Of a DNA stretch of 64,000 bases, positions 1,102 to 52,210 are shown one piece after another (position 1 is the first letter of the stretch; every line of letters begins with the position of its first letter). The position numbers were made by a program, and so were the translations under genes. Origin of the DNA: Orbicella franksi (Eukaryota); assembly GCA_964199315.1 (NCBI GenBank), contig OZ116699.1:29946001-30010000 (forward strand), given 5' to 3'. The notes under the pieces are model-generated. The model saw only the letters and a list, made by a program, of their open reading frames with translations. It was not told where the DNA came from and searched no databases.

Positions 1102-1127
1102 TATCATTATAAAAGACAAAACATTCC

Positions 1128-4332: not shown

Positions 4333-4992
4333 GCGTTGTCCTACGTCGTTAGCCTTGCGGCATTCAGCTGGCACGTGCCAGTGTTGGACATTTACACAGA
4401 CTTGTTCTCTAGGACCTTGAGCTCATTGAATGTCGGCGAAGATTCTCAAGGTTTTAGTGAGTAAAAGTTAGAGAAGTCAGGGAGATTATGGAAACAAAAC
4501 AGAAATGTCATACTGGATCTTATTTAGGTGTTGCCGTAACATGTGTTAACTTCCGTGCTAGCATCTCTCGCGCTTTCCACATTCCGGGTAGGATAAAAAA
4601 AAAAAAACTAACTAGCACTACTCTAAAAAACAATGTCAGTTCACTGAAGAAAAGTTCACGCGCCATGCTTCAAGGTGGCCCAATCCTGAAATGTGATTAT
4701 TTTCTGCCAAATGATGGGTTTCTATTTTTTTTTATTTTTATTTTTTTGTCACAAAAATAGTTAAAGTTTTTGAAACGGTGGAAATGGTTAATTGAATTAT
4801 GTTCTGTCGGTCAACGTTTATTAAACGTCGTTTACTCGAATATTGTTTTAACGGGTTACTTGTGAAGTTCCACCGTACATTGAAAAAGAAAAACTGGATA
4901 TTATCGGAGTAGTGACAATAGCAAATAGTTATTATTGTTAGCGAGGAGAGAAAACGTTTCAGTGGATGATTCTGGTTTTCTTTCAGACTACA

Positions 4993-5068
4993 ATGGCGTC
5001 ACTACACTTCTTGCTGGCGCTGTTTCTACAGCTAGCCATTGCTGCTCTTTTCTTTCAACAGAGCAATG
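4993..5068 (+). CDS. Gene A signal-peptide exon
   Basis: [25 protein letters not shown], hydrophobic core, phase-1 donor gtaagt. Confidence 0.8.
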
Positions 5069-14000: not shown

Positions 14001-17000
14001 AAAGTGCAAATTACTCAGAAGCTTTGTGGAGTATCTGGGACATGTCATCTCTGCTGAAGGACTGCACCAGTCTCCCAAGAAAGTCAAGGCCATCACCGAG
14101 ATGCCAACACCGCAGGATGTCACACAACTGCGCGCTTTCCTAGGCATGGTCCAGTATTATGCCAGGTTCTTACCAGACTTGGCTACCCATCTGGCTCCGC
14201 TGCATCGGCTGTTACAGAAAGAGGTGAAGTGGTCTTGGGGAGCTGAGGAAGAAGCTAGCTTCAGAGTGGTGAAAGAGATGCTTCTACAAGATAAGGTTCT
14301 CGTGCACTATGACCCTGACTTGCCACTAGTTCTGGCCACAGATAGCTCCTCTTATGGTCTTGGCGCTGTATTGTCACACCGTACTCCAGAGGGTGAGGAG
14401 CGGCCCATTGCCTATGCATCCCGTTCTCTGTCAGAAACAGAGAAGAAGTACTCGCAAATCGAGAAAGAGGCCTTATCCCTAGTCTGGGGTGTGAAGAAGT
14501 TCCAAACCTACTTAGAGGGTCGTCATTTTACCCTGGTTACAGACCATCAGCCCTTGAAGTACATAATGGATCCTGGGAAGGCCGTGCCAGTTACCGCAGC
14601 AGCAAGGATACAGCGTTGGTGTCTCTTCGTAGGCGCTTTTGCATACAGCATTGAGTTCCGAGGGACCAAACAGCATGCTAATTGTGATGGTCTATCCCGC
14701 CTTCCGCAACCACGGGCACCTGTTGACAAGCCAGATGAAGTGGAAATGTTCCATACGACTGTGGTCGAGGCCTTACCAGTCACCGAACAAGAGCTGAGAA
14801 TGCAGACTCGGAGAGACCCAGTACTTTCCCGTGTCCTAGAGCTCGTGCAGTGGGGATGGCAAGAAGCAGAAGTCCACCCAGAGCTAATCCCTTATGCTCA
14901 TCGTGCGAGTAAAATCACGATCCATCATGGGGTTCTGATGTGGGGTAGTAGAGTAGTCGTCCCAACCAAACTGAGAGAGAGAGTTTTGGAAACCCTACAT
15001 GAGGGTCACATCGGTATGGTCAAGATGAAAGGTCTGTCCCGGGGTTACGTTTGGTGGCCAAACATTGACAAGGACATCGAAGGAGCAGTCCGAAATTGCG
15101 AAGGATGTCAGGAGACAGCAAATAATCCAGCTCGTGCACCCCTGCATCGGTGGGAGTACCCTGCCCTTCCCTGGCAAAGACTGCATGTTGATTTTGCTGG
15201 GCCATTTCAGGGGAAGATGCTGATGGTGGCGATCCATGCACACAGCAAGTGGCCTAAGATTTTCGTGCTGGAGAACACCACTGCTGAGGAGGCCGTGAGT
15301 GTACTGCGTTCCCTGTTTGCCCGCATGGGACTTCCCGATCAGATTGTGTCTGACAACGGGCCCCAGTTCACATCAGAAACTTTCATGCAACCACTGATCT
15401 TAGCCCTGCACAACTCCTGTTAGGCCGAAATGTCAAGACAAGGTTGGACCTAATTAAGCCCGACATTCAAAGAGAGGTCAACAAAAAGTTGCTCCAGCCA
15501 AACAAAAGCACCTTGAAGAGTTTTGACCACAGCCAGAATGTTTGGGTCCGCAACTACCGTAGAGGTCCAAAATGGGTGCGGGGCACAGTCATTGGGCAAA
15601 CGGGTCCAGTCTTGTACACAGTCAAGGTAAATGACCAAACCTGGAAGCGCCATGTCGAGCAACTACGAGATCGCAACATCTGTCCATCTGCAACGGAAGT
15701 GGTGAATGATGGTGCTGTTCCTGAGGAGGTGGAGCATGGAGTGCCTGCTGTTGTGGGGTCCGAGTGGAAGGATGTGCCGCCCCTGGCTGTGACGCCCACT
15801 AGAGAGGGTCACCCCCCTGAGCCTGAAAGTCAGCGACCGATTCCAGAACCTGAGTTGATTGCTAACAGCACCGGTCGAGTTGTCAAAGCACCCACCAGAT
15901 TGAAAGACTATGTTTGTGACTAAGGAGAACTGTACTGTTGGGACTGTTTTTACAGTACCGACATTTTACCTGAGAGACTTTGTTATTTGTTCTTGAACTT
16001 TGTTTTATTTTTGTTTTGTTTTGTTTGTTAACATTGTTTAGTCTTAAAAGGGGAGGAAACTGTTAGGTTTTCCCGGTTGGGCTCCCTGTTTGTCACGTGA
16101 TCTGTTTTCCATATTTGGCCTCCCACGAGGTCCTCGCGTTCAGTTGAATAAAGAGTGTTCCGCCATCTTGGTTTAGTCTTTTATTTGTCCTCCCTATTTG
16201 CGAATACACAACAGTTGGGATTGGTTAAAAGAACTTGTGGAGATCTCAAGGACATTGATACTAAGAAAACACTATACTGTGGTCTTGTGAGACCTTTATT
16301 GGAATATTCATGCGAAACTTGGAACCCTCATACAAAACGTAACATTGATAAATTAGAGTCTGTTCAGCGAAGAGCCACCAGATGGATTACTAAGTCTGAT
16401 GATGATTACGGTCTTAGATTATCGAAGTTAAAATTGTTGTCTTTATTTAATAGGAGGTTTATTAGAGATACTACATTTTTGTTTAATGTAATTAATGAGC
16501 ATTATGATATAGATATCTCAGACAAGCTCATGTTTTGTAAGGACAGAAGCACAGGCCACAACTTAAGGGAAAATGACACACAGGATCTTATCCCAAATCT
16601 AAGTAGGACTAATGGTTTTAAATATAGTTTTTTTTTAACCGGATTGTTAATGAATGGAATAGTTTACCTAATCACATTAGAGAAGCAAATTGTATTGGAA
16701 CTTTTAAAAGGACTGTTTTAAGTTATCTTATGGATAATTAGAATATTTGTATATTTGTATTTGTATTTGTATTTGTATTTGTATATTTGTATATATATTT
16801 TAAATTTTGATAAGTGGGGACATCCCTAGTATGGTGCCATTGCGCTTTTGGTTGTCTCCTTCTCCACTGCTTTTTGTTTGTTTGTTTGTTTTTAGTTAGT
16901 TATCTTAATTTTTCATAATGTATTCGTATTGTATGGAGTAAATTGCAATAAATAAATAAACAAAAAGCCATATAATAAACAACTTGTTAACCTCGATCGA

Positions 17001-20000
17001 TTGTTCGGTAAAGATCTCAAACCTTGGCCTTGCCGTATTAACCTCGCCATTGTTTGGACAATAAGGCAAGGCGGTCTCACTCACGGCACGGTTAACAAGT
17101 AGTTATTAATATCGCCGTAATTTGCCCGTTCCTCGTTTGTTATTCTCTTTACTGTAAGGCAAAATTAAATTTGGATTGGCGTATTAAACTTAGTTTAATT
17201 AAGATTAATTAATCAGGCTATTTTACTATTGCTGGAGCTGGAGTTTAATGTTTAGGCGCATAAAAAACGAAAAAGACTGTCCAAGGTATATTACGAACCT
17301 ATTACCTAGAGATGCAGATAACAGGAGTGTCACCAGAGCTGACCGCTATGGAATGTGTAATTTGGTGTGTCCACGTTATAATAGGGAAACTGAAGGGAGG
17401 GGGAGTACTTTTCAAGTTCGTGGGTTTAAGCTTTGGAATGCGATTCACTCGATAAGAAAGACACCGTTGACACCTTTAAAACTGCTCTTAAAAAATACTT
17501 TTTAGCCTAGTTTCTACGCTACGTGTATAAATGTCTTTTCATCAGAGAATTCTGATGTATATACTTTCTCTCATTTCCTAGTATTTTACATTTTTAATTT
17601 ACTGTATTTGTCTTAGTATTATTATTACAGTAGAATCTCTATTAAGCGGCCCCCAATTAAGGGGCCAACTTTTATTTGGCGGCCAGCGGCCAAAGTCCCA
17701 GACAAATTGTCAGCTATACACTGTAATAAAAACATCTATTCAACGGCCACCTCTATTAAGCGGCCGCGGCCAGCTCTTGCCGTCCCAAGCGTGATTTTGT
17801 TTTCTTTTATACCTCTATTAAACGGCCAGGAAGATTTGAAGTTGGACGTTTTTAGCCAAATAAATCTAAAAGAATGACTGTGGAAAAGTAATTGTTTCTT
17901 TGGCTTTTGTTGACGTTATGGACCATATTATAACCATCATTGTTCTACTTTTTCTCCACTTGCATTTGTTTGTACATATATATTTGATAAAGTGAAAACT
18001 GGACCACGCCCAAAGTTGTTTTCGGGTGAACCTCTATTAAACGGCCACCTCTATTAAGCGGCCAGTTGTCTCGTCCCCGAGAGTGGCCGCTTAACAGAGG
18101 TTTGACTGTATTTGTAATTTAGATTGAGGGCCACTGGTTTATCAGTTTTTACTGTTGTGTGCTACCCTCAAAAAATAAAATTGTTACTTTACAGTAATAC
18201 CTACAACAAGACCAACGGGAAGACCTACCACTAGATTAACAGGTAACCATTCCTTATCTTTAATTTTCTTCTTTTATATGAAAGCAACAGGCTAGAATAG
18301 ATACAATGGAAACGAAAAAACCTGTTAAGGTAACGGACAACAGTTCTTCCAATAACCATGTGTTACTGTGGATAATAAGTACTGCTGCTCCTCGTGGTTC
18401 CGGGAGACGTTGAATGAATGACAAACCCGATACGTGTTATCGAACGTCAACTAACAAGTTGTCTCTTAAAAACACTAACATCAACACAAAAAGGAAAAGT
18501 AGGCAGTGGAAATTAATATACATTCTCAGAGTCAGGTACGATCTCTTTGAGTTGTCTTCTCATGGAATAAACTGATTTGGTTGCCTCATATTTCGTTTGA
18601 TTATATGATTAACACAATCCTTGTGACAGTAGATTTTTAGTGCGGAAACATCATGTTCTCTTTGTCTTTGTAAGGTTCACCTGCCCGAAAGATTTCAACT
18701 ACAACTGCAGGAAAGTCCACCACTCCATCTGGCACAGGACGAGTTACCACACCAGGAGTTATTACGAATATAGGTTGGTTACTTCAAAAATCAAACTTTG
18801 CATAAGTTGGATAAAAGCAATAGCATTAGGTTTAAGTTATGTGAATTTCGTCGTTTGACCAGCTCAAAGTCTTTACACCCTTTATTCATTTCTATGCAGA
18901 TCCTCTCACGTGTTTGTTTCTTTAAAATTTCTTATTTCCATGGAAAATTCAACGGCATACATATATCTTATGAATATACTTTAAAGATATTTTGACATCT
19001 TTATTGTATTTTACGAGTTCTTTATCTTTAACCATATATCGATCAGTGGTACATGTATGACTACATTAGAGTGTTGGTTGCTCTTGGGAATACAAGGCAA
19101 GAAAGTTTCCTGAAACAAAATCGGAAGAGGACTCTAACACCTTCTCTGAGGAGTGGGAAGATTAAATTCTATTTATATGCAGGCCATAGAAAGCCCATAC
19201 AGTATTTGAAGCCATGGTATTGTAAAATTGAGTATAATAAAAGTTAATTAGAAGTCAGTTAAAAGTTAAATCCTGTTTTCGTTTCAGACGGATTCAGAAT
19301 AGAAGTTGTGGAGTACATCAACCGATTCCGACGACTCCACGGCGCAGGCCCGCTTATCCTCTCGACTCGCATTTCCATAGCCGCTCAGAACTGGGCGCAA
19401 ACGTTGCTCAGTCGTGGCACCACGTCGATAGATCCGAACACGAGTTACGGCACGAATGTCTTCTCAAAGGTTGGTGCTCGAACGGGATTGGCTCAAACGT
19501 CTGTGGTCACATGGTACACTTCAGTGAAGCATTATGACTGGGCGAGACGACAGTTAAAAGTTCTCGCGTTGCCTTTCATTCACCTTATATGGCTCTCAAG
19601 TAACTTTGTAGGCGTTGGATTGACCAGGTCGCGAACTGCAAAGTTTTTTGTTGTGGTGTACTTTGACCCAATGCCGGGAAATAAACCACCATCTTTACTG
19701 AAAGACAACGTTCTACCATACACAGGTACATTCACAAAATAAGTCAAAGTAACTCTAGTAAAACGGACCTGAATGTCTCAAAGATGACTTTTTTTATCAT
19801 AGCTCTTGACATGTCTTGCGTATTATTCTTATCCTCTTACTTTTTTTTTATGTTCTGCTTAAGTTAAAGCGTTTTCAAGATTTACATTCCTTTAATTGAC
19901 TAGTCACTATGTAATCCTGTTAGTTAATTATATTCTTCAATTCCCTTTTATTAATTAGTCAACAAGACGTAATCGAGGACATTTTATAATGAGATTTGCT

Positions 20001-23000
20001 TTCTCTGATCTAACTACCTTACGTTTTGAATTTTTTTAGATGTGTTCATCCTGCTGCAGAATGGTGAGTCATTTTTTTATATTTCTTATGTTTTATATTT
20101 TCGTAATGCATCCGTAGAGTTGCTGAATGGCACCCGGCTTATTAATCGTTATTCTCCAACATGACATTTGGCAAAATTGTAATTATCTAGTCGCATTCGT
20201 CTTCTGTTCTATTCACAACATTTGTTTGATTATTTACAGTATCCTCATTTAGCACAGCACTGATGATAAATATTCTGACCCAGTGAATTATTTATTTTAT
20301 TTCATTTTCTCTGTAAATTAAATTAAATCAAATTAGCCTGGCTCTAGAGAGCGGTCTTCATATGAGTGTCCAATAGCGATTGGTTTTGCATCAACTACGC
20401 TACACGATTGGCTTAAAAAAAACTCGCGCCACTATGTCATCCAATCAAAAGTAAAACCAAAACCCATTGTGACTCGCTCGCACTCTTTTCCCCGCGTTTC
20501 ACGTCAGCTATATGAAATTACTTCGAGTTTTGATTGGTTAACTGTATTCTTGTCTGTGTCCTTTGAAATTGGTTTTGGTTTGACGACACTCAATTGTAAA
20601 CCGCTCTATATATACAAGACTGAGACGTTGTTTAACACTGTGCTGTTTATTTAATAGCCATAGTGTCTTGCAACCCTGGCTATACGAATGAAGACGGCAC
20701 TTGTTACAAGTATCACTCAGACACGCAGAATTGGGACGGAGCATTGTTCCAGAGCGCAAAGGAAAACGCTACCTTGATATCGTTTCACAAGACATCAGAG
20801 GAAACTTTCGTACAGAAACTGGTCCCTACAGGAAAAACAGGTTTAATTTGGACAGGCCTGAACGATCTGATTACTGAGGGAACTTATACTTGGTCTGACG
20901 GCACCAGCGTCGAATACACCAGCTGGAAAGTAAACGAACCAACTGGATCAAAAGAGGATTGTGTTTGCATTGAAATGTCCAGTTACGGCACCATGTCCGA
21001 TGCTCCATGTACTGAGCCTCATAATTACATTTCAAGGCAACCACTTGAAGGTGAGGGCTTCACTTTAAGATTATTGATAGTTTTTGACATTTTTTATAAT
21101 AGGAAAAAAGATATTTTCTTGTAGTGACCACTGTTCGTACGAAGTGGAATGCTATTTGATCGGACTGGGAAACGTGATCGTTTCCTTTTTTTCCCTTTTT
21201 AATTTTAAACTGCATACTCAAAAGAAAAAGATCTCAATGTTTACTAGTCGTTAAACATACCATGGGATGAAATCGCTTATGAATATAGTTTACAACCTGA
21301 TGATCCATCCTCGCCATTCCTAATATTAATACTTGCGAATAAACACGAAAACGATGACCAAGACAGATTTACAGCTAAGACAAGTATGAACTAAAGCAAT
21401 AATTTTCATTCACGAAAACGTTGTCTTCTTTTGAAAAAAAACATTTCAGGTCTCATAACATATCGAGTGAAACTTCAGCTGGTTTTCTTACTGTGGACAG
21501 ATGACTATAGCCAAACGACCACACTATCGTATATGGAGCTGAAACAAAAGATAGAAATACTGGTAGGCATATAGTGCCGTAAATGGATAATTGATTCCCT
21601 TTATATAACCGCAGCGTTACAAATTCCCTCAACATAATGTATTGAGTGTGCACCCCAAGACATTGTGGACCTTTTAGGGATAATGTAAACAAAAGACCAG
21701 CCAACTTCAGAAGTGGTATTCTTGAGCCCCGGGACCACCTCTTGACCACCTGGTCACTCCTCCTCCTGGTGCAGTTAATAAAATTTATCCCTAAGCCTGA
21801 GTACCTTACTAGCTAGGCTGACGCAATCATTATCTAACTCTGGTTCTCGTTACACGTAACCATAACTTTGTTGCATTTCTTTCGTTGCAATTGTATCTTA
21901 CAGGAAAAAAACAAAAAAACAAAAAAAACAATAGAAGAACAATAGCCAGGGCTTGATTGCTTGACCCATCGGCTTTATCATGATCATCATGCATCATACA
22001 ACATGAAGGGCTTCAAAGAACGTTCAAACTTTCTAGATGGACAATGTCGATATAATAGATATTTCCTATTTTTATGTTTATTATTTATCTTTTTTACAAT
22101 CTTCTTTTCAGCTGTTGGAAATTTTTAAAATCGACACTACTTTTGTATCGGGATACGTCGAAGAGTTCACGTAAGTAACAGTTCAAGCCGCAATATTACT
22201 GAATTGAATAATTTTCAAAGCGAATCTGTTCAATAATGGTGATGTTTATAAATAATATATTATTTCTTATTGGAAATTTAAAAAATAGTAAAAGTACGAA
22301 GCCATCCCCTCAAACGACAACCAAACCAACAAAGCCCGGAATAACGACACCTGGTTCCCAGACCACCACATCGTCTGTCTCCGTTGCAACTGGCAGACCA
22401 ACTGGCAAACCAACGACCAGACCAACACTGTTTTCACCAGGAACCACGCAGGCCACAACTCCGGCTTCAAAGCCAACTTCGAGTGGGACCTCTAAGTAGG
22501 TTGCTATTTAGTTTTTGTCAGCCAATTAAACGATTATTATGCTACAAATCGAAGGCTGCTCGAGTATGTACGATTTTGAATTGTCATTAGGTGTGCAAAC
22601 AACAGAACGACAAACCGACTGACCAACGAATAGACAGACGCGCAGGCTGAACGACAAACAGATGATACAGACAGCCTTCTTCATCAACTGCTTTATCTCT
22701 CGGTAATTTGTATTTGTCATGGTGAAATAATGGTGCCTTATAACTTGCCTTATAACTTGCCTTATGACACTCTCAGCGTGGTCGTCTAGCCAAATGGCAT
22801 TTCGGCAACTGAATGAGCAGGATCATATAATGATCAGTGATACGACTCAATTTGTCATCGAAATGTGAGATGCAAAACTAGCATAAATTGGAGACGTTTA
22901 CAATCCATATTCTCTCCCTACTTCACTACAAACTGTCTCAGTGGAAGTCATTGTTTCTTTAAAGCCCGCTACTGGTTAAGTATCTTTTTTGCTCGAATTC

Positions 23001-23777
23001 GCCAGTGTGAAGCCCACAGTAACGGTGTCAACCATTCTGAAGTTTGGTCCTGGTGTAGCTCCTGACCCAACTAAGCCACTTCAAGACCATTTGAGGAAGA
23101 ACCTTGGGCGACTTTCAGCTCCTTTAAATCAGAAATCGCTTATTCAGTCTGTTAGGATAGTGCATCCAGGTATGGATTTTACTTTACATTTTCTACATAG
23201 ATATCGTTACTGCAAAATGATAGGTTTTGCATTCGCGATCGTTGACGTGGTTCTCATTATTTCCTAAGATGTTTATGTAAACACGTTAACACAATGCCTT
23301 TCAGATCATGACTGTCTGTAATAGCGATTTAACTCTTGATCTACCAGAAGTGGGCGGCAAGGGAAGAGTTCAGTGAAGGCTTTCTATTTTGAGAAAGGGG
23401 ACCGGGATTTTTGACGACGCTATCAAAATAATTTTGCAGAAGCAGGTGTATTTTGCATATAAGAAAATGTCTTTCTTACTTTAAGTCTAAGGCAAGTGTT
23501 GTTCGTTGCAGGCGTTCCACCAGCCGTATTGGGAACTTGCACCTCAAGCTGCCTCACAACCTGCGTCGTGTCTTGCAACCCATTCTGTTGTAACTCTAAA
23601 AAAAAGTATTTGAATCGGATGGCTATACAACCACCAAGACCTGTACAGCTACCGTGTATCCCTAGTGCTGACAACATTTGTCCGCCTCAGATGAATCCCC
23701 CTGTAAAGGCAACGAAAGTAACAGATCCTCCACAGCATATAATTCATCTGCCACCTCCGCAGATGCAACCACCATGA
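4993..23777 (+). CDS. Gene A: secreted SP-VWA-LamG-EGF-CAP-CTLD-SEA-CRD protein, C-terminally truncated duplicate of gene B (~1039 aa, 14 exons)
   Basis: Exons 4993-5068, 5463-6038, 6349-6812, 8247-8424, 8840-8959, 18195-18242, 19288-19725, 20040-20063, 20664-21050, 21450-21562, 22112-22170, 22289-22495, 23006-23169, 23512-23777. All introns GT-AG with compatible phases; 3120 nt, no internal stop. Confidence 0.75.
5463..6038 (+). CDS. Gene A von Willebrand factor A domain exon
   Basis: [12 protein letters not shown] (MIDAS DxSxS), [23 protein letters not shown]; phase 1-1. Confidence 0.92.
6349..8424 (+). CDS. Gene A LamG/concanavalin-A-like (pentraxin-type) domain, exons 6349-6812 and 8247-8424
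   Basis: [54 protein letters not shown]. Confidence 0.8.
8467..8763. mobile_element. MITE (attattccacgagcg...gatccagtttttaata); duplicate near 31115-31410
   Basis: Intronic and non-coding, with internal inverted segments (gagatggttgatagcc / ggctataaccatctc). Confidence 0.5.
8840..8959 (+). CDS. Gene A EGF-like domain exon
   Basis: [38 protein letters not shown]; six-Cys EGF spacing, phase 1-1. This frame is not in the ORF track. Confidence 0.9.
9280..11958 (+). pseudogene. LINE ORF2, 5' part: apurinic endonuclease and reverse transcriptase
   Basis: APE motifs LNARSL, ITETWL, RGGGV, YRPPS, GDFN, SDH. RT motifs [40 protein letters not shown]. Frameshift near 10430, in-frame TGA at 11165, frameshift near 11497. 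Confidence 0.92.
11959..11993 (+). repeat. 5' LTR, internally deleted to 35 bp
   Basis: TGTTA fused to the last ~30 bp of the 3' LTR sequence (one mismatch). Confidence 0.85.
11996..12013 (+). promoter_or_regulatory. Primer-binding site complementary to the 3' end of tRNA-Ser
   Basis: TGGCGACGAGGATGGGAT is the reverse complement of ATCCCATCCTCGTCGCCA, the 3' end of eukaryotic tRNA-Ser(GCU) as I recall it; starts 2 nt after the LTR. Confidence 0.8.
12091..15423 (+). CDS. Gypsy gag-pol polyprotein (gag with two Zn knuckles, protease, RT, RNase H, integrase N-part)
   Basis: [78 protein letters not shown]. The frame breaks after FTSETFMQ. Confidence 0.93.
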   Translation: MPDEAPNTSQTIGKVTKYVVGTDWESYTEQLDFCFLANGVGDAKTKKAVRLTNLPVETYQLAKDLVAPAQLKDEAITYDVIVERMKKQLKPERSALVARYEFDNRARNSGESVSHYVATLKHLATECKFGEAVRTERLRDRLVSGIRDPKMITDLLKVKLADLTFELAVQKCLAIEQANKDVQVLQGEQGPDIPVNKLDTAQPREGQAPPKLPQKTQGSRGKDTKPPKPCYRCTGSHKSQKCPFIKERCFHCGIIGHTQRACKKKQATQQVTVAGVNVMEGADSEESDGEYGELYHVSDSKNRKPISLEVYLEGRPVIMELDTGSAVSVVSEGVYKEYLRHVPLKDTPLKLRTYTGESVKPMRFCYVTVQYKGQSKELPIYVMKNEGPTLFGREWLESIQLDWPLLQLETSDTNPALEEVLNKHTSVFSDGLGRMKKIQARVQLKESARPRFWKARPVALARKPAVEEALRELEAEGVIKKVTTSEWAAPIVTPVKKDGSVRVCGDFKVTINPQLDVDEYPLPRIDDIYANLGGGTLFSVIDLRHAYLQMEVEEQSRPFLTINTTRGLYQYQRLPYGVASAPAIWQRAMDQVLEGLPGVFCYLDDIIVTGSTMEEHLERLVAVLKRLEEYGLKANREKCKLLRSFVEYLGHVISAEGLHQSPKKVKAITEMPTPQDVTQLRAFLGMVQYYARFLPDLATHLAPLHRLLQKEVKWSWGAEEEASFRVVKEMLLQDKVLVHYDPDLPLVLATDSSSYGLGAVLSHRTPEGEERPIAYASRSLSETEKKYSQIEKEALSLVWGVKKFQTYLEGRHFTLVTDHQPLKYIMDPGKAVPVTAAARIQRWCLFVGAFAYSIEFRGTKQHANCDGLSRLPQPRAPVDKPDEVEMFHTTVVEALPVTEQELRMQTRRDPVLSRVLELVQWGWQEAEVHPELIPYAHRASKITIHHGVLMWGSRVVVPTKLRERVLETLHEGHIGMVKMKGLSRGYVWWPNIDKDIEGAVRNCEGCQETANNPARAPLHRWEYPALPWQRLHVDFAGPFQGKMLMVAIHAHSKWPKIFVLENTTAEEAVSVLRSLFARMGLPDQIVSDNGPQFTSETFMQPLILALHNSC
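15404..15923 (+). pseudogene. Integrase C-terminal remainder in a shifted frame
   Basis: [47 protein letters not shown]. The core segment carrying the third DDE residue is deleted near 15390. Confidence 0.85.
16046..16060 (+). promoter_or_regulatory. Polypurine tract
   Basis: aaaaggggaggaaac immediately before the 3' LTR. Confidence 0.8.
16061..16213 (+). repeat. 3' LTR, 153 bp
   Basis: TGTT...AACA termini, internal AATAAA, followed by the TSD. Confidence 0.9.
16219..16721 (+). pseudogene. LINE ORF2, 3' part resumed after the Gypsy insertion
   Basis: RANRVLG|LVKRTC is rejoined across the insertion; [27 protein letters not shown]. Confidence 0.9.
17248..18190 (+). mobile_element. 3' fragment of an L2/Crack-type LINE interrupted by a MITE; duplicate near 32187-33130
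   Basis: Remnant [21 protein letters not shown], then an AT-rich 3' UTR ending aataaaattgttact. Confidence 0.6.
17628..18108. mobile_element. Tc1/mariner-type MITE (TA-CAGT...ACTG-TA); duplicate at 32567-33047
   Basis: TA target duplication, CAGTAGAATCTCT / AGAGGTTTGACTG TIRs, repeated cctctattaa(g/a)cggcc motifs. Confidence 0.75.
19288..19725 (+). CDS. Gene A CAP/SCP (GAPR1-like) domain exon, degenerate
   Basis: [51 protein letters not shown]. Confidence 0.85.
20664..21050 (+). CDS. Gene A C-type lectin domain exon
   Basis: [35 protein letters not shown]; phase 1-1. Confidence 0.9.
21450..23169 (+). CDS. Gene A SEA-like domain split by a Ser/Thr-rich exon (exons 21450-21562, 22112-22170, 22289-22495, 23006-23169)
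   Basis: [46 protein letters not shown] [ST-rich insert] VTVSTILKF. Matches the SEA pattern and the exon sizes of gene C. Confidence 0.65.
23512..23777 (+). CDS. Gene A terminal exon: minicollagen-type CRD plus shortened Pro-rich segment
   Basis: [18 protein letters not shown] at 23538-23591. In-frame deletion relative to gene B. TGA at 23775-23777. Confidence 0.75.
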
Positions 23778-24336
23778 CGTGGCTCCTTTATATCATTATA
23801 AAAGACAAAACATTCCATAGGCCATTTCCGAGTTACCATGTACCTCTGTTTCAAAACGAGTCCTCGTGCAAAACCTTTCATATGAAAATGACTTTGATTT
23901 GCATGAAAATGAACCTGCCTCAGAAATGGCCTATTGGAATGTCAAGAGAACTAAAACTATTTCTATTCATTATGTTTGCAGAAAAGACATGTAAAATGCA
24001 GTTCATGGGTTAAAAGTTAGTCCGCCGTTTAACGAGCTGTTATAAAAACCCAACGATCGAAGAATTGTGCATTTTGTTTATCTGTATTCTATTTACAGCA
24101 TTTAGTTTCCTTCACTAATTTTAGGATCTCAAGAACATTACAATATTTTACAGCTTGTGCTGATAGTTATTGCCTTCTATGTTTAGCAGTATTAAATCCG
24201 TTTTTCTTCTTGAAGAAAGTGTCGACTTCTGTGTCTGGATCATCATGTAAAATCTCTCTTGATTATTAATTCAAGAGCCCTAAAACTATAGTGTGTTATT
24301 TTTGTTATTTTCACTGTCCTATATTTTCAGTCTGGT

Positions 24337-24630
24337 GGAGGCATGGTGGCCTCATGGTTAGTGCGCTCGTCTCCGGATCGAGTGGTCCGGGTTCGAGTCC
24401 TAGCCAGGGACATTGTGTTCTTGGGCAAGATAATTTACTCTAGCAGTGCTTCTCTCCATCCAGGTGAACAAATGGGTACCGGCGAATTTAATGCTGGGGG
24501 TAACCCTGCGATGGAGTGGCATCTCATCCAGGGGGGAGTAGAAAAACTCCTAGTCGTTTCATGCTACGAAAACAGGGATAAGCTCTGGCCTGATGGGCCA
24601 CTCGGCGCGTTTAATTTGCAGACTTAGCCT
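24337..24630 (+). mobile_element. tRNA-derived SINE (copy B)
   Basis: Duplicate of 1648-1936. Confidence 0.8.
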
Positions 24631-27497
24631 ATATTTCCGGTGTAGTGACTGAAAAAGGAAAAAGAACTATTTGGTTAGGACTCACACTACATGATTTAAG
24701 AGATTCAGTCACGGGTATACGAGTAAGAACAATACAAACATAGCATAGGCAGCTCACAACACCGAAAAACGAGATGAGCAACCCAAAACTAGGTTAACCT
24801 GAGACAAAAGGGAAAACAAACATAGCCGGTCTTTAGAACCTGCATGGGCAGGGTACCATAAGTGTTGTTTAACAAATCCCCATGAACCACGAGAGTATTT
24901 TGTAGAACCCCTGGCTTGCTTAAAGTCAAAATAAAATTCAAAACAGTTCGTCCAGTAGACAAAGCCGGTTTGCCGTCAAAAACATAACGTTCAATGACTT
25001 TTTTTTATTTCAAAAGAGCTTAAATCTTACTAGATCGAGAAAGGACAAATTATGGGCACACCTCTAATTATCTGATTGTTCAGTTTTTTGATAGACCCTA
25101 AACTAAAAATAAACTTGTGGAATTGCAGGTTTCTAAAAATCAATTTTAAATAAACAATTCTTCGAATCTGAACTTCTTTTCCGTAGATAATGAATATATT
25201 TATGTACTACAATAAAGACTCAACTAATGGCTGTACTGTGCTAATAGCTAACCTTGGTGAGTACTTATGATGTACTGTAGCTGTAAGTTCTAACTCATTA
25301 GGGCCTTTCCGTTTGCAATCGGCTTGCTTCACAGGATTTAAAGACTTTACTTTATATAGGTCTTCATCGGTTTTGTTCTCGACATGCAGTAGACGTTGTT
25401 TTAATTCCAGTGAAATGACTTCATCCCTTGAATATTATCTCATTCAATTATAACGAAACGTTGCCTTAATCATTTCAGTTCAAATACTTTATTCTTGGCA
25501 TATAGAAACAACCACAAAAATGTTGTAGATATTATGATATTTCAAAAGATATTCTCCATGCCTAAAAATTTATCTGAAATACTTTTCAGTCTTGCTGAAG
25601 TCTGACCAATGCGCTTGCCAATCAACGCACAAACTGAAATTCTAGACTTCCTGGATTGAGTTTCTTTATAACATTTAAGAGTTATTTAAAATGCTTGCTG
25701 ACTGTCCACGATTTCTCTGTTCACGGTTCTTACATTGTGGTGCACCACCAATTTCTCCGTTAGGTAGACTATTACAAAGACGACCAGTTAGCAAAACAAT
25801 TTAATGGCCATCTTGACAAATTGATCGCTTAAAGCTTCATCCCACAGCTAACAGTATAGAGGTTTGAGTACTACTTGTAAGAGTATAATCAAAATGACAC
25901 AAGCACGCCTTCTGGTCCTGTTATTTCAGAAAGTACATCAAGTTCATTTTAACTTTTCTAAAAAAATTCATCGATTGATTGATTGATTCCTCGCCAATCT
26001 ACCTCATGCCAAATGGCACATGGTCTCATTCAGTTTAAATTTTCTTGTTTAATTTCATATTAGTGAATTTTGTATAGTCAGGAAGTCATCTCCTTACTTC
26101 GTTCCCCGAATGCAATTCAGTGCATGCCTTCATTACGAGTTATGTATGTATGGTTCTCATATAATCGCCCAGATCGTTTCGATCGTCGCGATCGTTTGCA
26201 ACCGCCGAGTTAATCAGAGGCGATCCAAGCGATTGGGAGCAATAAAGGGATTTTCATATAATCGCCCCAATCGTCTGGTATGAGTAAAGCGCGCGGTCAA
26301 GGCCTGGGCCTGATGGAACACTCTTTCGTTTCTTCAAGTAACGTCATCTTCTCTCTGCCTTGGGGACATCCAAACCAAACTTTTCTCCTATAGCTTTTTA
26401 AGAGTTAAACCTAATATATTTATTTTAATTTATAGTCATTTGAATACTTGCTGTATATAATCTCGTATTTTTGAACTTGTTCCATGAACAATGCCTGATT
26501 AAACTCAAATGTTTTAATGACCATGTTGGTTGTGAGGCCGTGTTGAGACCTGGATAATACTGATGCACCATGGGACAGTTTGGATCGCTTCGATCGTCTC
26601 CCGGTGAGAAAGTAGTTCTCATAAAATCGTTCACGATCGCTCCGGTCTGCGACCAATCGCCCGGATAGAACACGGACGATCCAAGCGATCGCGATCGCTC
26701 TAATCGCTACCAGCATTAACAATCATCTGTGTAAGACCACTTTTTGAAGTGACAGCGGTGATTGAAACGATCGGGGCCATAATATGAGAACCAGCCTTAA
26801 GCGTTCTCCTACGTCGTTAGCCTTGCGGCATTCGGCTGGCACGTGTCAGTGTTGGACATTTACACAGACTTGTTCTCTAGGACCTTGAGCTCATTGAACA
26901 TCGGCGAAGATTCTCAAGGTTTTAGTGAGTAAAAATTAGAAAAGTCAGGGAGATTATGGAAAGAAAACAGAAATGAGACTCAGCAGTCGTTTTTCACAAC
27001 AGAAATGTAATACTGGATCTTATTTAGGTGCTGCCGTACCGTGTGTTAACTTCCGTTCTAGCATCTCTCGCGCTTTCCACATTCCGGGTAGGATAAAAAA
27101 AAAAAAAAAAAAACTAACTAGCACTACTCTAAAAAACAAGGTCAGTTCACTGAAGAAAAGTTCACGCGCCATGTTTCAAGGTGGCCCAATCCTGAAATGT
27201 GATTATTTTCTGCCAAATGATGGGTTTCTATTTTTTTTATTTTTTATTTTTTTTCACAAAAATAGTTAAAGTTTTTGAAACGGTGGAAATGGTTAATTGA
27301 ATTATGCTCTGTCGGCCAACGTTTATTAAACGTCGTTTACTCGAATATTGTTTTAACGGGTTACTTGTGAAGTTCCACCGTACATTGAAAAAGAAAAACT
27401 GGATATTATCGGAGTAGTGACAATAGCAAATAGTTATTATTGTTAGCGAGGAGAGAAAACGTTTCAGTGGATGATTCTGGTTTTCTTTCAGACTGCA

Positions 27498-30400
27498 ATG
27501 GCGTCACTACACTTCTTGCTGTTTCTGCAGCTAGCCATTGCTGCTCTTTTCTTTCAACAGAGCAATGGTAAGTTCTCAAAAGATTCTAGAACCTTTCTGC
27601 AAAAGAACGAGAACAACAATGTTCAAGAATGGTTATTCAACCCAGGGTCCTTCTGGATACCAACCATGATGTTGAATGGGCCACCCTAGCTAAATAAAGG
27701 TTTTTCTCACTTACAGTTACCCAGTAAAACGAAAATAACGAATACGGTAGTTCATAAATAGCTGTGTCTCAATGGATAATGCTTATGGAGAAAAGTGAGT
27801 CACTCTTTTGCTTGCAGTATGATGTTCAGTCTACTCTCCTTATTGTTTTAATTAATAGTTACTCAAAAGAACTATTTCATACCATCCAACCGATCTAATC
27901 GTTGAAAATAGATTCGAACTTAGATAAAGACTTTCAACATCAATTAACTTTATTTTAACAGGAGCCTTCTGTAGACGATCGGTTGATATTGCCTTTGCAA
28001 TAGATGCCTCGGGCAGTGTGGGAAGTTGGGGATATTACCAAGAAAAGACCTTTGTACGCAATACCATCGCCAGATTCGGAATCTCGCGCTCAGGCACGCA
28101 CGCCGCGGTCATAGTTTACAGCACGGGTGCGCAGGTCGCGATATCGCTCACTCAGTACACCAGCTACTCGAGATTCTACTATGCCGTACAACGAATTCCT
28201 TACACTAGAGGACTGACAAGGATTGATTTAGCACTGAAAGTGGCAGCCGAACAAGTGTTTTCGGAAGATGGCGGTGTACGGAGTAATGTACCCAAAATAC
28301 TGGTGCTGATGACGGACGGTTTTCAAACTCGTACCAGGGATTCCTTACCGCTTGACAAGGCGGTGCTGCCTTTGAAAGCTCAAGGCGTGCAAGTGTACGC
28401 TTTGGCTATAGGGCAATACACCAAAGAATATGAATTGAGGTTAATCGTGGAGAAGTCATCACATATTTTTCGATCCAGCAGGTTTAGTGGTCTAAAGAGA
28501 GTGATAGGAAGATTGGCAGTAACCACATGTAGAAATGGTGAGTATGTACTGCAGTAAAAATCAAACCGTTCATGATTAATTTTCTGTCTTCTGACACGTG
28601 CGCTATTGAGATTAGTTACAAATTCATCACATGCTAGCTCGCACTTCGTTTTTTTTTTCTCAAACCGTTTACTTTTAACAAATTGTTTATATCGCTCCTT
28701 GTTTCTGGATCGTTGCCATAGTTCTTCCCATACTTATTTAATTCAAATCTCAAATGCAAAAGACCAAAAAAGTAAAATATTCCTATGTTAGTTAAATCCG
28801 TTTTAGTTACGACGAGATTAACGCCAATTTTTTTTCTTCCAACTTACAGCTCTCCCTGTGGCATTTGCGATCTATCCACTGAACACGCAAACCCGGGGAA
28901 GGGACATCAGCGCACGAAGAGCCCCCACGGGGTATTTAAGTTCAGTAACCAGTGCAATGGGGCCGTATGGGAGACCTGGGGGATCTTTTTATCTACAAGG
29001 AACACCCAACAGCTACATCGACTTCCCTAATTCAGCTACAGGAAAACTTGACACGTGGACGTCAATTTCTATATTTTTATGGGTTTATCCCGAGGAAAAA
29101 CCCGGCCCGATCGTCAACTATCGAAAAAGCGGGCACGGTCTTGGTCTTTGGCTGTCAGGCACGCGTGTGCTTGAGGGTCGTGTTTACAGTCGTCGAAGTT
29201 ACTACAGAAGAAAACTGCACTTTACTCATTTCGTGCCAAGAAGATGGTATTATGTGGGTCTCATATACGATAACACCCACGGATATGCAACCTTGTGGGT
29301 CAACGGACGGGTGGTAGGATGATTTCCATTGTACATATTTGAACAATGTATAAATATCATTAATAACTCCCTATTTAAACTATGGTTCATGTGCATGAGG
29401 TTACTGCTCCCAAACACATTTAAAACGATAGCTAGTGTGACAAAAACGCGCATTGCGCTTAATTTTCTTCGCGAGAACACCAGAGAACAGGCAGTTCCCG
29501 TATTTCTTAAGGCCAATTGCCTTCCAGTGTTATTCTTGTTTTTCCACCAGTTTTACTACTTGATGTATGATGAGCACAAAAAAAGCCTGGATTAAATTAA
29601 ATTCAGTACAATGCATAACTAACTATAACACCAGATCATCCACGAATAAGCGCTTCTATGTAAAATTTTCAAGAACAGAGGAAACGATAAAATCCTTTAA
29701 AAGGATATCCTTTATGCATCAGATAAGCAAATTTTACCCCAAGCTTCGCTATTAAGGCGGGACGTAACCTAAAATTCTGAAAGAAATTCGAAGTTTTGTT
29801 ATTCACGGAACTCGAACCTTAAGGTATTGAAATATTATTTTGACAAGTACCGTTACTTTAAGTTTAAAGCTCGTTTTCTCAAAACGAGTTATTTTCGCCT
29901 TCGAGAAAAGATATCTTGAGAAGGATTTATTCAATTGAGCTAAAATTTTCAGGATTTGTTGTTCTTAGTGCGTTCTGTGGGATAAGCATAGAACTTTTCC
30001 ATGCAGTGCATTCTGTCGAAGTTATGTATTGAAACGTATGCTAGATTTTCTGTGAGATTTAACTGGTCATCACTTCGTGCATTTTTAACTTTTCAAAAAT
30101 CTCTATGCTTATCCCAGGAAGCTATTTGTTTTCTTTTATAAAATGTAAAAAATTATTCCTTTTGATCAGTTCTTGTAGGAGTTATCTTTTCTCAAGTAAG
30201 CCCTGGCATTCCTCAGCAGGTGGCAATATTAATCAGCGGGTGTCAGGTTACAATACAGTTATAGGGTACAGAAATACTTTTTCCATAATTTTTGGTCTTT
30301 AAGCTTTTTAAAAATGTATACTTTGCCATGGTTTGGAGTTAAATCTTAGCCGCGAGAAAGTGTTTAAAACATGGTGTTGTTTCAAGTCCCACCTTAAAAT

Positions 30401-33400
30401 GCAAATTAAAAATTGTGTCCTGGACAAATTCAGAAAGCAGCAAAGATGAAAAGAATACCCTCGTGAAAACAACGCAATGGTGCCTGAGGTTTGAGAAAAT
30501 TTCTCGTAAACGAGGCTTGGTGGTGAAGTTTAAGCATGTGACGTAATCGTGCATAAGACTTATTCACTGGTAATTAAGCTTTAATTAAAACGTCATAATA
30601 AAGCGAATTCAAAACAAGGAAAGCTAGAGTGGGGATTACATCCGGAGGGGCTTATAACCGGATGTATTTTTTGGTTTAGCGGTAGATGGGTTCATAAGCG
30701 GGGGCCTTATAAGTGGGGCGGGGGGGGGGGGGAAGGGCTTATAGGCGACAGTTTACGGAGTTTATTAACAATAGGTTTAGAGACAGACAAAAATTACTTT
30801 ACGAGATTATCTGAATACTAACTAGTAGCTCTGATTTTCAAAGAATTCCAGCAAGTTTTGACATTTTCTTTTGCATTTATTTGATGTTTCAGGTTTTTCG
30901 CACAAGAATGAGCCGAATACACCTGGCTACCCAGCATTCCATTCGAATGGGTGCCGTGAGTGGTGTTAATCAGTATTTTAGAGGTCGGGTCACGTGCCTG
31001 CAAATATATGGAATGATGTTGACCTCCAATCAGATAGCGACCATAAAGAAGAAGTGTGCTGCTAGGGACCGTAAGTGGCTTAATGTAATCTCTATGCAAT
31101 CAGTGTATTTAACAATTATTCCACGAGCGTGCGTTAGATAAGAGATGGTTGATAGCCGACGAGGCGGGAAGCATCGAGTTGGCTATAACCATCTCATATC
31201 CAACAAGAGTGAGTGGAATAATTTTTTTAATTAAAAACGCCCCTAAAATGTAGAAACAAATTAAAATAAAAATAAAAGCGCCCCAAGGAATCACGCGTAC
31301 GCTAACCATTTGTGTAGAGCAAGGTATAATGGCTCATATACCATGCTGGCTAAGCCATTGAAAACTCTTGAACTGCATTATCCAATGATCCAGTTTTTAA
31401 TATAATAATGTATTGTTAAATTGCATTCCTTTGAGTAACCATTTTCTCTTCCTCTTATATCAAGACTTTTTTTTGTATAATTTCAGAGAAAGATCCTTGT
31501 CTTTCCAGCCCATGTAAAAATGGCGGAAGCTGTATCGTCGCTTCAAAAGATAAAACTGGTTATCGTTGTCGCTGTAAACCTGGTTATCGTGGGCATAGAT
31601 GTGAAGGTAATAAATAAATAAATCAATGAATCAATCAATAAATAAATAAACAAATAAATTTTAATTCGTTTTCTCTGTCACTTCTGGTTAAAGAAATTAT
31701 CCTTGTGGCTGCTGAAAAAAAAGCAGCCTGCTAATTGCAATTGCAAGGATAGTATTAATCACTTTAAACTCTCTATCCGCTGTCCATTACTTATTATGTG
31801 GCTTGTGTTTGTAGCCGATATAACGTGCGCTCTGATTAGCCAATTCTAGAGCATTTTTCTCTCGTGATGTCCACGAGCCGATAACGGGCCTGCAAAAGCA
31901 AAGCAAAAAGCCATATAACAAACAACTTGTTAACCTCGATTGTTCGGTAAAGATCTCAATCCTTGGCCTTGCCGTATTGACCTCGCTATTGTTTGGGCAA
32001 TAAGGCAAGGCGGTCTCACTCACGGTACGGTTAACAAGTAGTTATTAATATCGCCGTAATTTGCCCGTTCCTCGTTTGTTATTCTCTTTACTGTAAGGCA
32101 AAATTAAATTTGGATTGGCGTATTAAACTTAGTTTAATTAAGATTAATTTATCAGGCTATTTTACTATTGCTGGAGCTGGAGTTTAATATTTAGGCGCAT
32201 AAAAAACGAAAAAGACTGTCCAAGGTATATTACGAACCTATTACCTAGAAATGCAGATAACAGGAGTGTCACCAGAGCTAACCGCTATGGAATGTGTAAT
32301 TTGGTGTGTCCACGTTATAATAGGGAAACTGAAGGGAGGGGGAGTACTTTTCAAGTTCGTGGGTTTAAGCTTTGGAATGCGATTCACTCGATAAGAAAGA
32401 CACCGTTGACGCCTTTAAAACTGCTCTTAAAAAATACTTTTTAGCCTAGTTTCTACGCTACGTGTATAAATGTCTTTTCATCAGAGAATTCTGATGTATA
32501 TACTTTCTCTCATTTTCTAGTATTTTACATTTTTAATTTGCTGTATTTGTCTTAGTATTATTATTACAATAGAATCTCTATTAAGCGCCCCCCTATTAAG
32601 GGGCTAACTTTTATTTGGCGGCCAGCGGCCAAAGTCCCAGACAAATTGTCAGCTATACACTGTAATAAAAACCTCTAGTCAACGGCCACCTCTATTAAGC
32701 GGGCGACCAGCTCTTGCCGTCCCAAGCGTGATTTTGTTTTCTTCTATACCTCTATTAAACGGCCAGGAAGATTTGAAGTAGGACATTTTTAGCCAGATAA
32801 ATCTAAAAGTATGACAATGTGGAAAAGTGATCGTTTCTTTGGCTTTTGTTGAAGTTATGGACCGTATTATAACCATCATTGTTCTACTTTTTCTCCACTT
32901 GCATTTGTTTGTACTTATATATTTGATAAAGTGAAAACTGAACCACGCCCAAAGTTGTTTTCGGGTGAACGTCTATTAAACGGCCACCTCTATTAAGCGG
33001 CCAGTTGTCTCGTCCCCGAGAGTGGCCGCTTAACAGAGGTTTGACTGTATTTGTAATTTAGATTGAGGGCCACTGGTTTATCAGTTTTTACTGTCGTGTG
33101 CTACCCTCAAAAAATAAAAATTGTTACTTTACAGGAATACCTACAACAAGACCAACGGGAAGACCTACCACTAGATTAACAGGTAACCATTCCTTATCTT
33201 TAATTTTCTTCTTTTATATGAAAGCAACAGGCTAGAATAGATACAATGGAAACGAAAAAACCTGTTAAGGTAACGGACAACAGTTCTTCCAATAACCATG
33301 TGTTACTGTGGATAATAAGTACTGCTGCTCCTCGTGGTTCCGGGAGACGTTGAATGAATGACAAACCCGATACGTGTTATCGAACGTCAACTAACAAGTT

Positions 33401-52177: not shown

Positions 52178-52210
<33 letters not shown>

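Follow-up and report, generated by a model that had tools for sequence, protein, structure and literature searches.

The join of a tandem duplication forms the stop codon of a transcribed, shortened NOWA-like gene copy in the coral Orbicella franksi

A NOWA-like gene of Orbicella franksi has been copied in tandem within the window studied here, a stretch of 64,000 nucleotides of contig OZ116699.1, and the join between the two copies forms the stop codon of the upstream copy, gene A. Gene A has an open reading frame, is transcribed and spliced over exons 9-13 and across the join, and has diverged at a different rate from its full-length neighbor, gene B. The reading that we favor as a whole, with confidence modestly better than even, is that gene A encodes a constrained and working secreted capsule protein with a single cysteine-rich domain (CRD). 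Here, we describe the structure of the duplication, the content, transcription and divergence of gene A, and the explanations that compete with this reading.

The join between the two copies creates the gene A stop codon

Self-BLAST of the window revealed a direct tandem repeat in which positions 1082-23776 (copy A) match 23771-39104 (copy B) at 95.5-97% identity. The copies are adjacent, in the same orientation and collinear, as in a partial tandem duplicate, and align in three blocks: A 1082-9262 with B 23771-31909, A 16958-23600 with B 31900-38570, and A 23603-23776 with B 38931-39104, the last at 98.9% identity. Past 39104, gene B runs on into the native remainder of its last exon. The features of the duplication are as follows (a slash marks a breakpoint).

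1082..23776, + strand: copy A of the duplicated unit, consisting of the upstream region and the truncated gene A (self-BLAST collinearity)
23777..39104, + strand: copy B of the duplicated unit, consisting of the upstream region and gene B as far as the last-exon breakpoint (self-BLAST)
1076..1091, + strand: original left breakpoint flank, AAACCGTG/ACGTGGCT (the aligned segment from 1082 matches 23771 onward)
39095..39110, + strand: right breakpoint in gene B (CCA TGT ATT), where the first C-x7-C repeat unit of B ends (sequence, self-BLAST)
23775..23777, + strand: join-made TGA stop of gene A (sequence; carried by RNA contig 23600-23823 of run X25)

The join lies at 23776/23777. At 39095-39110 gene B reads CAACCGCCATG/TATTCC, encoding Pro-Pro-Cys-Ile, and gene A around the join reads ...CAG ATG CAA CCA CCA TGA CGTGGCTCC..., with TGA at 23775-23777. 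Comparison of B (CCA TGT), the old left flank (GTG/ACGTGG) and A (CCA TGA/CGTGG) shows that TG (23775-23776), the only letters shared, is a microhomology common to both parents, and that the A at 23777 derives from the old left flank. The switch after the shared TG thus converts TGT to TGA, which confirms the proposal of the sequence-only reading that the duplication junction itself makes the stop of gene A. An immediate stop at a junction is expected by coincidence in about 3 of 64 cases, and it is a fact of the sequence that carries no statistical signal. The distance from the start of the unit to the ATG is 3,911 nt in A (1082 to 4993), in agreement with the 3.9 kb of upstream sequence that had been assigned to the unit, and 3,721 nt in B. 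The join was found once in its own assembly, with no alternative haplotig there, and an exact-pattern search for it in JGI metagenome contigs returned 0 matches.

Gene A is an open, shortened copy with a single CRD

The exon model of gene A and the features in and around it are listed below.

4993..23777, + strand: gene A CDS, 13 coding exons, 1025 aa (open model, GT-AG sites, RNA joints, outgroup boundaries)
4993-5068, 5463-6038, 6349-6812, 8247-8424, 8840-8959, + strand: gene A exons 1-5 (exon model)
19288-19725, 20040-20063, 20658-21050, 21450-21562, + strand: gene A exons 6-9 (exon model)
22112-22170, 22289-22495, 23006-23169, 23512-23777, + strand: gene A exons 10-13 (exon model)
23512..23777, + strand: gene A last exon, with N-type CRD, 360-nt deletion site (23600/23603), C-x7-C loop CIPSADNIC, and stop (sequence, translation)
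9263..16957, + strand: 7.7-kb retrotransposon-derived insertion in intron 5, in A only (self-BLAST, ORFs)
23817..23936, no strand assigned: high-copy dispersed repeat, 40 nt downstream of the gene A stop (summed contig depth)

The coding sequence is open, with no frameshift or internal stop in 3,075 nt and with 24 of 24 splice sites intact, all of the GT-AG type. The 13-exon model is supported by splice joints in RNA and by the orthologue at outgroup locus L009, in which the same exon boundaries give an open CDS of 1800 aa. The earlier statement that all exons are open with intact splice sites therefore stands, but its count of 14 does not, the model having 13 coding exons.

Gene A retains the signal peptide, the VWA, LamG-like, EGF, CAP, C-type lectin and SEA-like/mucin parts, one NOWA-type CRD and one C-x7-C loop. 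Missing from it are the remaining repeats, the CRD at the C-terminus and the Lys tail. Sequence and translation thus bear out the short paralog, with one CRD and one loop, that had been described. Within its last exon, a 360-nt in-frame deletion (-120 aa) is derived, since both outgroups (L009 and L010) have the 360 nt. The insertion in intron 5 contains APE endonuclease and reverse transcriptase (RT) ORFs followed by a 1119-aa RT-RNaseH-integrase ORF. Its 3' end is A-rich, and its target duplication is short and of the CAAAAA type; a search of the insertion for an LTR pair found none. Neither the deletion nor the insertion had been reported in the sequence-only reading.

No canonical AATAAA occurs within 1.1 kb of the gene A stop, the nearest signal being ATTAAA at 24191. 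The dispersed repeat at 23817..23936 has a summed contig depth, over all copies, of 1742 (run X2), 816 (X11) and 286 (X25), and many loose contig ends fall at 23817; this repeat hides the 3' end of the A transcript and breaks short-read contigs. Since the terminal exon contains the stop, A mRNA is no obvious target of nonsense-mediated decay. A search with the A-type last-exon ORF of a protein database, built ORF by ORF and without this species, gave one weak match of unrelated length, a result with no bearing on orthologues.

Gene B identifies the family, and the retained CRD is predicted to be N-class

Gene B supplies the parental organization with which gene A can be compared.

27498..41067, + strand: gene B, full-length parent-type copy, 1792 aa (exon model, Pfam, translation)
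38483-41067, + strand: gene B last exon, with N-CRD, C-x7-C repeats, expanded-loop C-CRD and Lys-rich tail (translation)
38979..39707, + strand: array of 126-nt (42-aa) repeats in the B last exon, each with a Pro-flanked C-x7-C (sequence, self-BLAST)

Pfam searches with the B counterparts of the A exons identified VWA, Laminin_G_3, EGF, CAP (E = 1.6e-12 on the B exon, from which the copy in A differs by 2 aa) and Lectin_C (E = 3.7e-15); SEA was represented by a weak, sub-threshold match in exon 9 (E = 0.014). Searches with the B last exon and VWA exon found relatives that are at most 93% identical. Gene A has one CRD and gene B two, in place of the C-terminal array of eight CRDs of the NOWA family, and we therefore refer to both as NOWA-like rather than NOWA. 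No Gly-X-Y run of the kind that forms the minicollagen helix occurs in the translation of A or of B.

The CRD of gene A has the Cys pattern C-x3-C-x3-C-x3-C-x3-CC, and the solved structure that it matches best is the NOWA CRD 2HM3 (E = 0.012), with six of six Cys aligned. N-CRDs are monovalent, and Val/Ile4 and Pro14 switch the domain to the C-CRD fold (PMC4863159). In the alignment to 2HM3, position 4 of the A CRD is Ser and position 14 is Asn, so that it is without these switch residues; by the residue rule of the same study, it is predicted to belong to the N-class, the monovalent type.

Gene A is spliced, and its transcription crosses the join

In polyA RNA-seq run X25, from an independent study, a 224-nt contig (23600-23823) crosses the join with one mismatch, extending 177 nt to its left and 47 nt to its right. 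Such a contig requires reads with junction 31-mers, because the parent sequences share just TG. Read depth in this run was 0 in most intron bins and 1-7 in exon bins, a pattern that speaks against DNA carry-over. Spliced joints with GT..AG ends were present in RNA at 21562>22112, 22170>22289 and 23169>23512. The A-type contigs had the A state at 3 of 3 A-specific SNPs (21481, 21486 and 21493), contained the 12 nt found only in A (22397-22408) and agreed with A at position 23132. Copy A is thus transcribed and spliced over exons 9-13 and across the join, in keeping with the suggestion that it is potentially expressed. The A-type RNA, from assembled contigs of one run, covers exons 9-13, all of which lie downstream of the intron-5 retrotransposon; the contigs carry no expression level or 3' end, and A/B mosaics among them are possible.

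Raw polyA reads of a second run, X22, included zero on any exon, whether A-type or B-type. This run is uninformative, and its silence probably reflects a sample without developing stinging cells. Other RNA runs were considered as further carriers of the junction (word shares of 0.52-0.58) and were dropped, since B together with transcribed parent flank already yields about 0.50; RNA evidence for the join was counted from X25 only. Among the DNA contigs listed for X2 or X11, none crosses the join, because contigs break at the shared repeat and the high-copy element. These DNA contigs were not used as proof of the join: they have A-specific features (the 12-nt insert), yet about half of their differences from A are B-like, and they may represent mosaic contigs or ancestral alleles.

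Together, the X25 contig over the join and the spliced A-type exon contigs make misassembly and silence both unlikely. The sequence-only reading had staked its case on reads spanning the junction and on a copy A neither untranscribed nor burdened with loss-of-function alleles; the independent X25 contig crosses the join, A is spliced, and exons 8-13 are clean in three other data sets, with no frameshift, stop or indel variants.

The two copies have diverged at unequal rates

Changes in A and B were polarized with the two outgroup loci, L009 and L010, which stand at the same distance from A as from B (about 85%) and both carry the full last exon. The ancestral state is thus the full form, and A, with its stop at residue 1025, is the truncated member, as in a partial duplicate. 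Between A and B, dN/dS is 0.36. The A lineage has accumulated 19 nonsynonymous and 12 synonymous changes, a ratio of about 0.5 (binomial p = 0.049 against neutrality) that rests on few counts with some sites polymorphic, and the B lineage 8 and 12, respectively. A relative-rate test on the nonsynonymous counts, 19 versus 8, gave a chi-square of 4.5 (our own calculation). Many of the differences between A and B are B-like in other samples, so that some "A-lineage" changes are young or polymorphic. Constraint on A appears relaxed yet still detectable, its ratio being only marginally below 1 and higher than that of B; the faster rate of A fits decay as well as a new role.

The indels provide a second measure. 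All three coding indels (3 of 3) are in frame, and the non-coding alignment contains 36 frameshift-type indels in 11.6 kb. Under neutrality, the chance of zero frameshifts in A is 0.009-0.055.

Alternative explanations

Gene A could be real and transcribed but functionless, a young partial duplicate drifting toward a pseudogene, with an open frame that reflects nothing but its youth (about 3-4% divergence from B). We regard this as a serious possibility, though we would not expect it to prove correct. It would account for the excess of nonsynonymous changes in A over B at equal synonymous counts, for a ratio barely under the neutral one, for the 7.7-kb retrotransposon in intron 5, for the loss of 120 aa and for the lack of a canonical polyA signal near the stop. 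Many reference-A alleles are also not common to other samples, and partial duplicates are common among young duplicates, many of them dead ends (PMC3449122). What it explains less well is the absence of frameshifts and stops from the coding sequence when non-coding sequence of the same age has so many frameshift-type indels, the restriction of coding indels to multiples of three, the full set of intact splice sites, and the correct splicing of A transcripts.

Two further explanations concern the layout of the locus rather than the fate of the gene. False duplications occur in heterozygous marine invertebrate assemblies, and the tandem arrangement might be an artifact in which two haplotypes of one gene were placed side by side; the roughly 96% similarity of the copies and the lack of a bridging DNA contig among those listed would agree with this. 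We consider an artifact extremely improbable, given that the window is gap-free, that the join, which an RNA-seq contig from a different study also contains, shows a clean microhomology of 2 nt in the middle of an exon, that a 7.7-kb insertion, a 360-nt deletion and 3-4% substitutions set A apart from B, and that A-type and B-type contigs occur together in single runs. The A exons might instead be used chiefly as additional 5' exons of an A-B fusion transcript made by read-through, with the short protein a minor by-product. The genes lie on the same strand, 3.7 kb apart, with no strong polyA signal after the A stop, and by the exon model the end of A exon 12 and the start of B exon 2 are both in phase 1 and could be spliced in frame. 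However, the sole joint seen from the A exon 12 donor, 23169>23512, leads to the last exon of A itself, no loose end falls at 23169 among the rows listed, and the RNA contig continues through the stop into the flank, so that this explanation is very unlikely.

Discussion

The reading that we favor, in which gene A encodes a working protein, begins with a lineage-specific tandem duplication of about 22.7 kb of a NOWA-like nematocyst gene. The copied stretch starts 3.9 kb before the start codon and breaks off within the last exon, where the first C-x7-C repeat unit ends, and its ends were presumably joined through the TG microhomology by non-homologous repair or by a replication error. As this join happens to read TGA, the upstream copy ends cleanly, with no foreign tail, and keeps the promoter region, the signal peptide, all globular modules, one predicted N-class CRD and one C-x7-C loop. 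After the duplication, A lost 120 aa in frame and gained the intron-5 retrotransposon. We infer that A may still function as a secreted capsule protein with a single handle for disulfide exchange, and that it may decorate or end the minicollagen/CRD network, with bridging left to B, which has two CRDs and several more C-x7-C loops.

The sequence-only reading had suggested a monovalent, chain-capping role. Single N-CRD fusion proteins fail to polymerize and inhibit C-CRD polymers in vitro (PMC4863159), which is a precedent for that idea. By analogy, A might be a selectively kept natural chain terminator, a large lectin/VWA cargo whose one monovalent N-class CRD would, as disulfides reshuffle, compete with B and other bivalent wall proteins and so tune the density or porosity of the capsule wall polymer in this coral lineage; we consider this specific role unlikely.

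Gene A is a well-documented young case in which the breakpoint by itself defined a new and shorter protein without recruiting a tail, and in which that copy is expressed with its frame intact. It is evolutionarily ordinary, a clean example of a partial gene duplicate, because partial duplicates are common among young duplicates. The pair is also a natural experiment on CRD valency, presenting the same cargo with one N-class CRD (A) or with two CRDs and further C-x7-C loops (B), and it would permit a direct test of whether, as the in vitro rule has it, the capsule network is capped or loosened by proteins with a single N-CRD.

The closest known relative in organization is Hydra NOWA (nematocyst outer wall antigen; CRD structures 2HM3-2HM6), in which, as in A and B, CAP/SCP and C-type lectin domains are followed by minicollagen-type CRDs. 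The eight CRDs at the end of NOWA compare with two in B and one in A; A and B differ further in their extra VWA, LamG-like, EGF and SEA-like/mucin modules and Pro-rich C-x7-C repeats, and are putative capsule proteins known here from sequence. The minicollagens share with A and B the CRD pattern C-x3-C-x3-C-x3-C-x3-CC at the start of a Pro-rich region, and with B a second CRD at the end, but are built on a Gly-X-Y collagen helix that is in neither A nor B. In its arrangement of globular cargo with one N-class CRD, A resembles the GFP-N-CRD fusion of Tursch et al. 2016 (PMC4863159), which did not polymerize in vitro and inhibited the growth of C-CRD polymers in a dose-dependent manner; the fusion is an artificial in vitro construct, and A adds a C-x7-C loop and many other Cys-containing modules. 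As a duplicate, A resembles the partial young gene duplicates reviewed in PMC3449122 and EXOV in Arabidopsis (PMC8824575): it arose as a DNA-level tandem with an intragenic breakpoint, has a shortened parental ORF, evolves faster than its parent and is expressed. It differs from them in that the join itself gives the stop, with no flank recruited, and in belonging to a cnidarian-specific gene family.

Tandem duplication and origin of the gene A stop codon

The window (29,946,001-30,010,000 of contig 2 in a 497-Mb coral assembly) contains no gaps. Self-BLAST revealed a direct tandem repeat, 95.5-97% identical overall, between an upstream, shortened duplicate (copy A) and its full-length, parent-type neighbour (copy B).

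Repeat blocks found by self-BLAST of the window
A 1082-9262 = B 23771-31909, direct, repeat block 1
A 16958-23600 = B 31900-38570, direct, repeat block 2
A 23603-23776 = B 38931-39104, direct, repeat block 3, 98.9% identity

At the end of copy A the forward strand reads CCG CAG ATG CAA CCA CCA TGA CGTGGCTCC, the TGA lying at 23775-23777 across the join (23776/23777). At the equivalent position gene B reads CAACCGCCATG followed by TATTCC (Pro-Pro-Cys-Ile), and the original left flank (1076-1091) reads AAACCGTG followed by ACGTGGCT. Together, these readings place the switch after a common TG, converting TGT (Cys) to TGA, and thus confirm the proposal of the sequence-only reading that the junction itself creates the stop codon of gene A. 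The same reading had placed 3.9 kb upstream of the ATG within the duplicated unit, and the measured start indeed lies 3,911 nt before the ATG of A. The origin of copy A is best explained by a tandem duplication that was non-homologous and microhomology-mediated. The chance of an immediate stop at such a join is about 3 in 64, a coincidence that provides a clean C-terminus within the terminal exon of A.

Gene structure and domain architecture

Reading frames and splice consensus yielded 13 coding exons, one fewer than the 14 previously counted for A. For three introns the splice is seen directly in RNA, with GT..AG at the intron ends (21562>22112, 22170>22289 and 23169>23512), and the same exon boundaries on L009, an outgroup contig from another coral, give one open coding sequence of 1800 aa in which all sites are GT-AG. 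Under this model the coding sequence of gene A (3,078 nt; 1025 aa and a stop) is open throughout, that of gene B encodes 1792 aa, and all acceptors and donors are intact in both copies, as had been claimed for A. Gene A retains all globular modules, the first cysteine-rich domain (CRD) and one C-x7-C loop (CIPSADNIC), but stops short of the other C-x7-C loops as well as of the C-terminal CRD and Lys tail; in this respect the A and B translations match the earlier description.

Pfam searches of exon open reading frames identified VWA (E = 5e-34), Lectin_C (E = 3.7e-15), CAP/SCP (E = 1.6e-12), EGF and Laminin_G_3 (E = 1e-5), the last scoring 26.2 bits, slightly below its gathering score of 27.6 bits; a SEA match on one exon was sub-threshold. 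The last exon of B (38483-41067) is an open stretch of 861 aa comprising, from N- to C-terminus, an N-type CRD, a spacer of 120 aa, a set of 126-nt repeats in which every unit has a C-x7-C between Pro, an expanded-loop CRD and a Lys-rich tail. A Gly-X-Y helix is absent from the A/B architecture. The predicted architecture is NOWA-like, combining CAP, C-type lectin and minicollagen-type CRDs. Both NOWA proper and minicollagen were rejected as assignments: NOWA, unlike the A/B genes, has eight CRDs, and minicollagen was discarded for want of the Gly-X-Y helix. A third paralogue, gene C (~47.2-52.5 kb; 47212-52531), has a CAP exon and a C-type lectin exon, together with an N-type CRD (CPPICSTSCVSSCAPSCC) and C-x7-C loops, as well as Met-Pro repeats and a C-terminal CRD with an expanded loop. 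With gene C beside A and B, the locus constitutes a small tandem family of NOWA-like genes.

Changes in copy A since the duplication

Directly after its CRD, A carries an in-frame deletion of 360 nt (120 aa); these nucleotides are present in both outgroups, and the deletion is therefore derived. Intron 5 of A alone harbors a 7.7-kb retrotransposon-derived insert (9263-16957, same strand as gene A) that encodes, in order, an APE endonuclease with reverse transcriptase (RT) and an open 1119-aa RT-RNaseH-integrase. Its tail is A-rich and is accompanied by a short target duplication, and a search of the insert for paired LTRs gave none. The insert could provide a promoter or polyA site within gene A.

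Smaller differences were also observed. At the signal peptide (5013) an in-frame Leu-Ala is present in A and in the outgroup and missing from B, and the mucin exon (22397-22408) has three GRPT/GKPT units in L009, two in A and one in B, likewise in frame. Upstream of gene A, a 158-nt palindromic element (3741-3898; 89% match to its own reverse complement) sits inside a ~220-nt stretch missing from copy B.

Transcription of copy A and reality of the join

Reads and contigs of coded sequencing runs were placed on 20620-24330 at a likeness of at least 97%. Polyadenylated RNA from a different study (run X25, coded organism A) gave a 224-nt contig over 23600-23823, with 177 nt to the left and 47 nt to the right of the join and one mismatch. 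As the two parent sequences have only TG in common, an assembler with k = 31 needs join-carrying reads to build this contig. The join is present once in the species' own assembly, which contains no alternative haplotig for the locus. A second polyA run, X22, yielded no raw reads for A or B, and the DNA runs X2 and X11 no join-bridging contig among the contigs listed; given the X25 contig, an assembly artefact is very unlikely. Other RNA runs were rejected as holders of the join, their word shares of 0.52-0.58 standing against ~0.50 from B and the parent flank alone.

Depth in X25 was 0 in most intron bins and 1-7 in exon bins, making DNA carry-over unlikely; one contig continues past an exon for 62 nt of intron sequence, a sign that some of the RNA may be unspliced. 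The copy-specific SNPs that had been proposed as a check were found: A-type contigs carry 3/3 SNPs (21481, 21486 and 21493) and the A-only 12 nt at 22397-22408, and the A allele at 23132 is spliced to the last exon. Since X25 also contains a B-type contig, both copies are expressed in this sample. A-type RNA covers exons 9-13, all downstream of the intron-5 transposon. Copy A is intact and transcribed, at minimum in its 3' half. A high-copy repeat (23817-23936) hides the 3' end of the transcript, and the closest polyA-like signal after the stop is ATTAAA at 24191.

This repeat is one of three short dispersed repeats (with 24337-24600 and 20345-20612), each having at least tens of copies in the genome at 78-91% identity; it lies 40 nt from the join and is plentiful in RNA libraries (depth 286). 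The donor of A exon 12 (23169) and the acceptor of B exon 2 (27962) are both phase 1, and a read-through splice between them could give an in-frame protein with doubled modules, although the splice joints listed include none of this kind.

Selection and possible function

Copies A and B differ at 27 synonymous and 31 nonsynonymous positions, with a dS of 0.038, near the intron divergence of 0.028-0.042, and a dN/dS of 0.36. L009 and L010, ENA contigs from more distant corals, are ~85% identical to A and likewise to B, and the duplication accordingly postdates their split. Polarised with these outgroups, the nonsynonymous to synonymous changes number 19:12 in the A lineage (ratio ~0.5; departure from neutrality, p = 0.049) and 8:12 in the B lineage (~0.21; p = 0.0006). 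The two ratios compare at p = 0.16 by Fisher's test, and a relative-rate test of the nonsynonymous changes (19 vs 8) gives a chi-square of 4.5 by our arithmetic. Many A-versus-B differences are B-like in other samples; either some of the changes assigned to the A lineage are recent or still polymorphic, or the contigs are mosaic. DNA contigs of X2 and X11 over 22079-23204 carry A-only features and are B-like at about half of the reference A/B difference sites; ancestral alleles, A/B gene conversion or mosaic contigs could account for this mixture.

The main rival to a capping role, and one we entertain with some doubt, is that A is expressed but slowly decaying. Many partial duplicates are dead ends (PMC3449122), and the ratio of the A lineage lies closer to neutrality than that of B. 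The three coding indels (6, 12 and 360 nt) are all in frame, against 36 frameshift-type indels in 11.6 kb of aligned non-coding sequence, and the probability of zero frameshifts in A under neutrality is 0.009-0.055. Segregating loss-of-function alleles of A had been named as a refutation; no stop or indel variants were seen in exons 8-13 in three other data sets. We lean towards A being a still working, single-handle capsule protein.

All six Cys of the A CRD align with the solved NOWA CRD 2HM3 (E = 0.012), and positions 4 and 14 are Ser and Asn, whereas the switch to the C-CRD fold takes Val/Ile at 4 and Pro at 14 (PMC4863159). The same study reports that N-CRDs form single intermolecular links, and that GFP fused to a single N-CRD fails to polymerise while inhibiting C-CRD polymers dose-dependently. 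With this precedent, it is a reasonable hypothesis that A would act as a monovalent capping or network-modifying subunit, and the truncated duplicate may help studies of nematocyst wall assembly. Among 290 young C. elegans duplicate pairs 21% are partial (43% in an outgroup-checked subset), as are 76% of Drosophila duplications segregating as copy-number variants (PMC3449122); as a partial gene duplicate, A is a case of an already known type.
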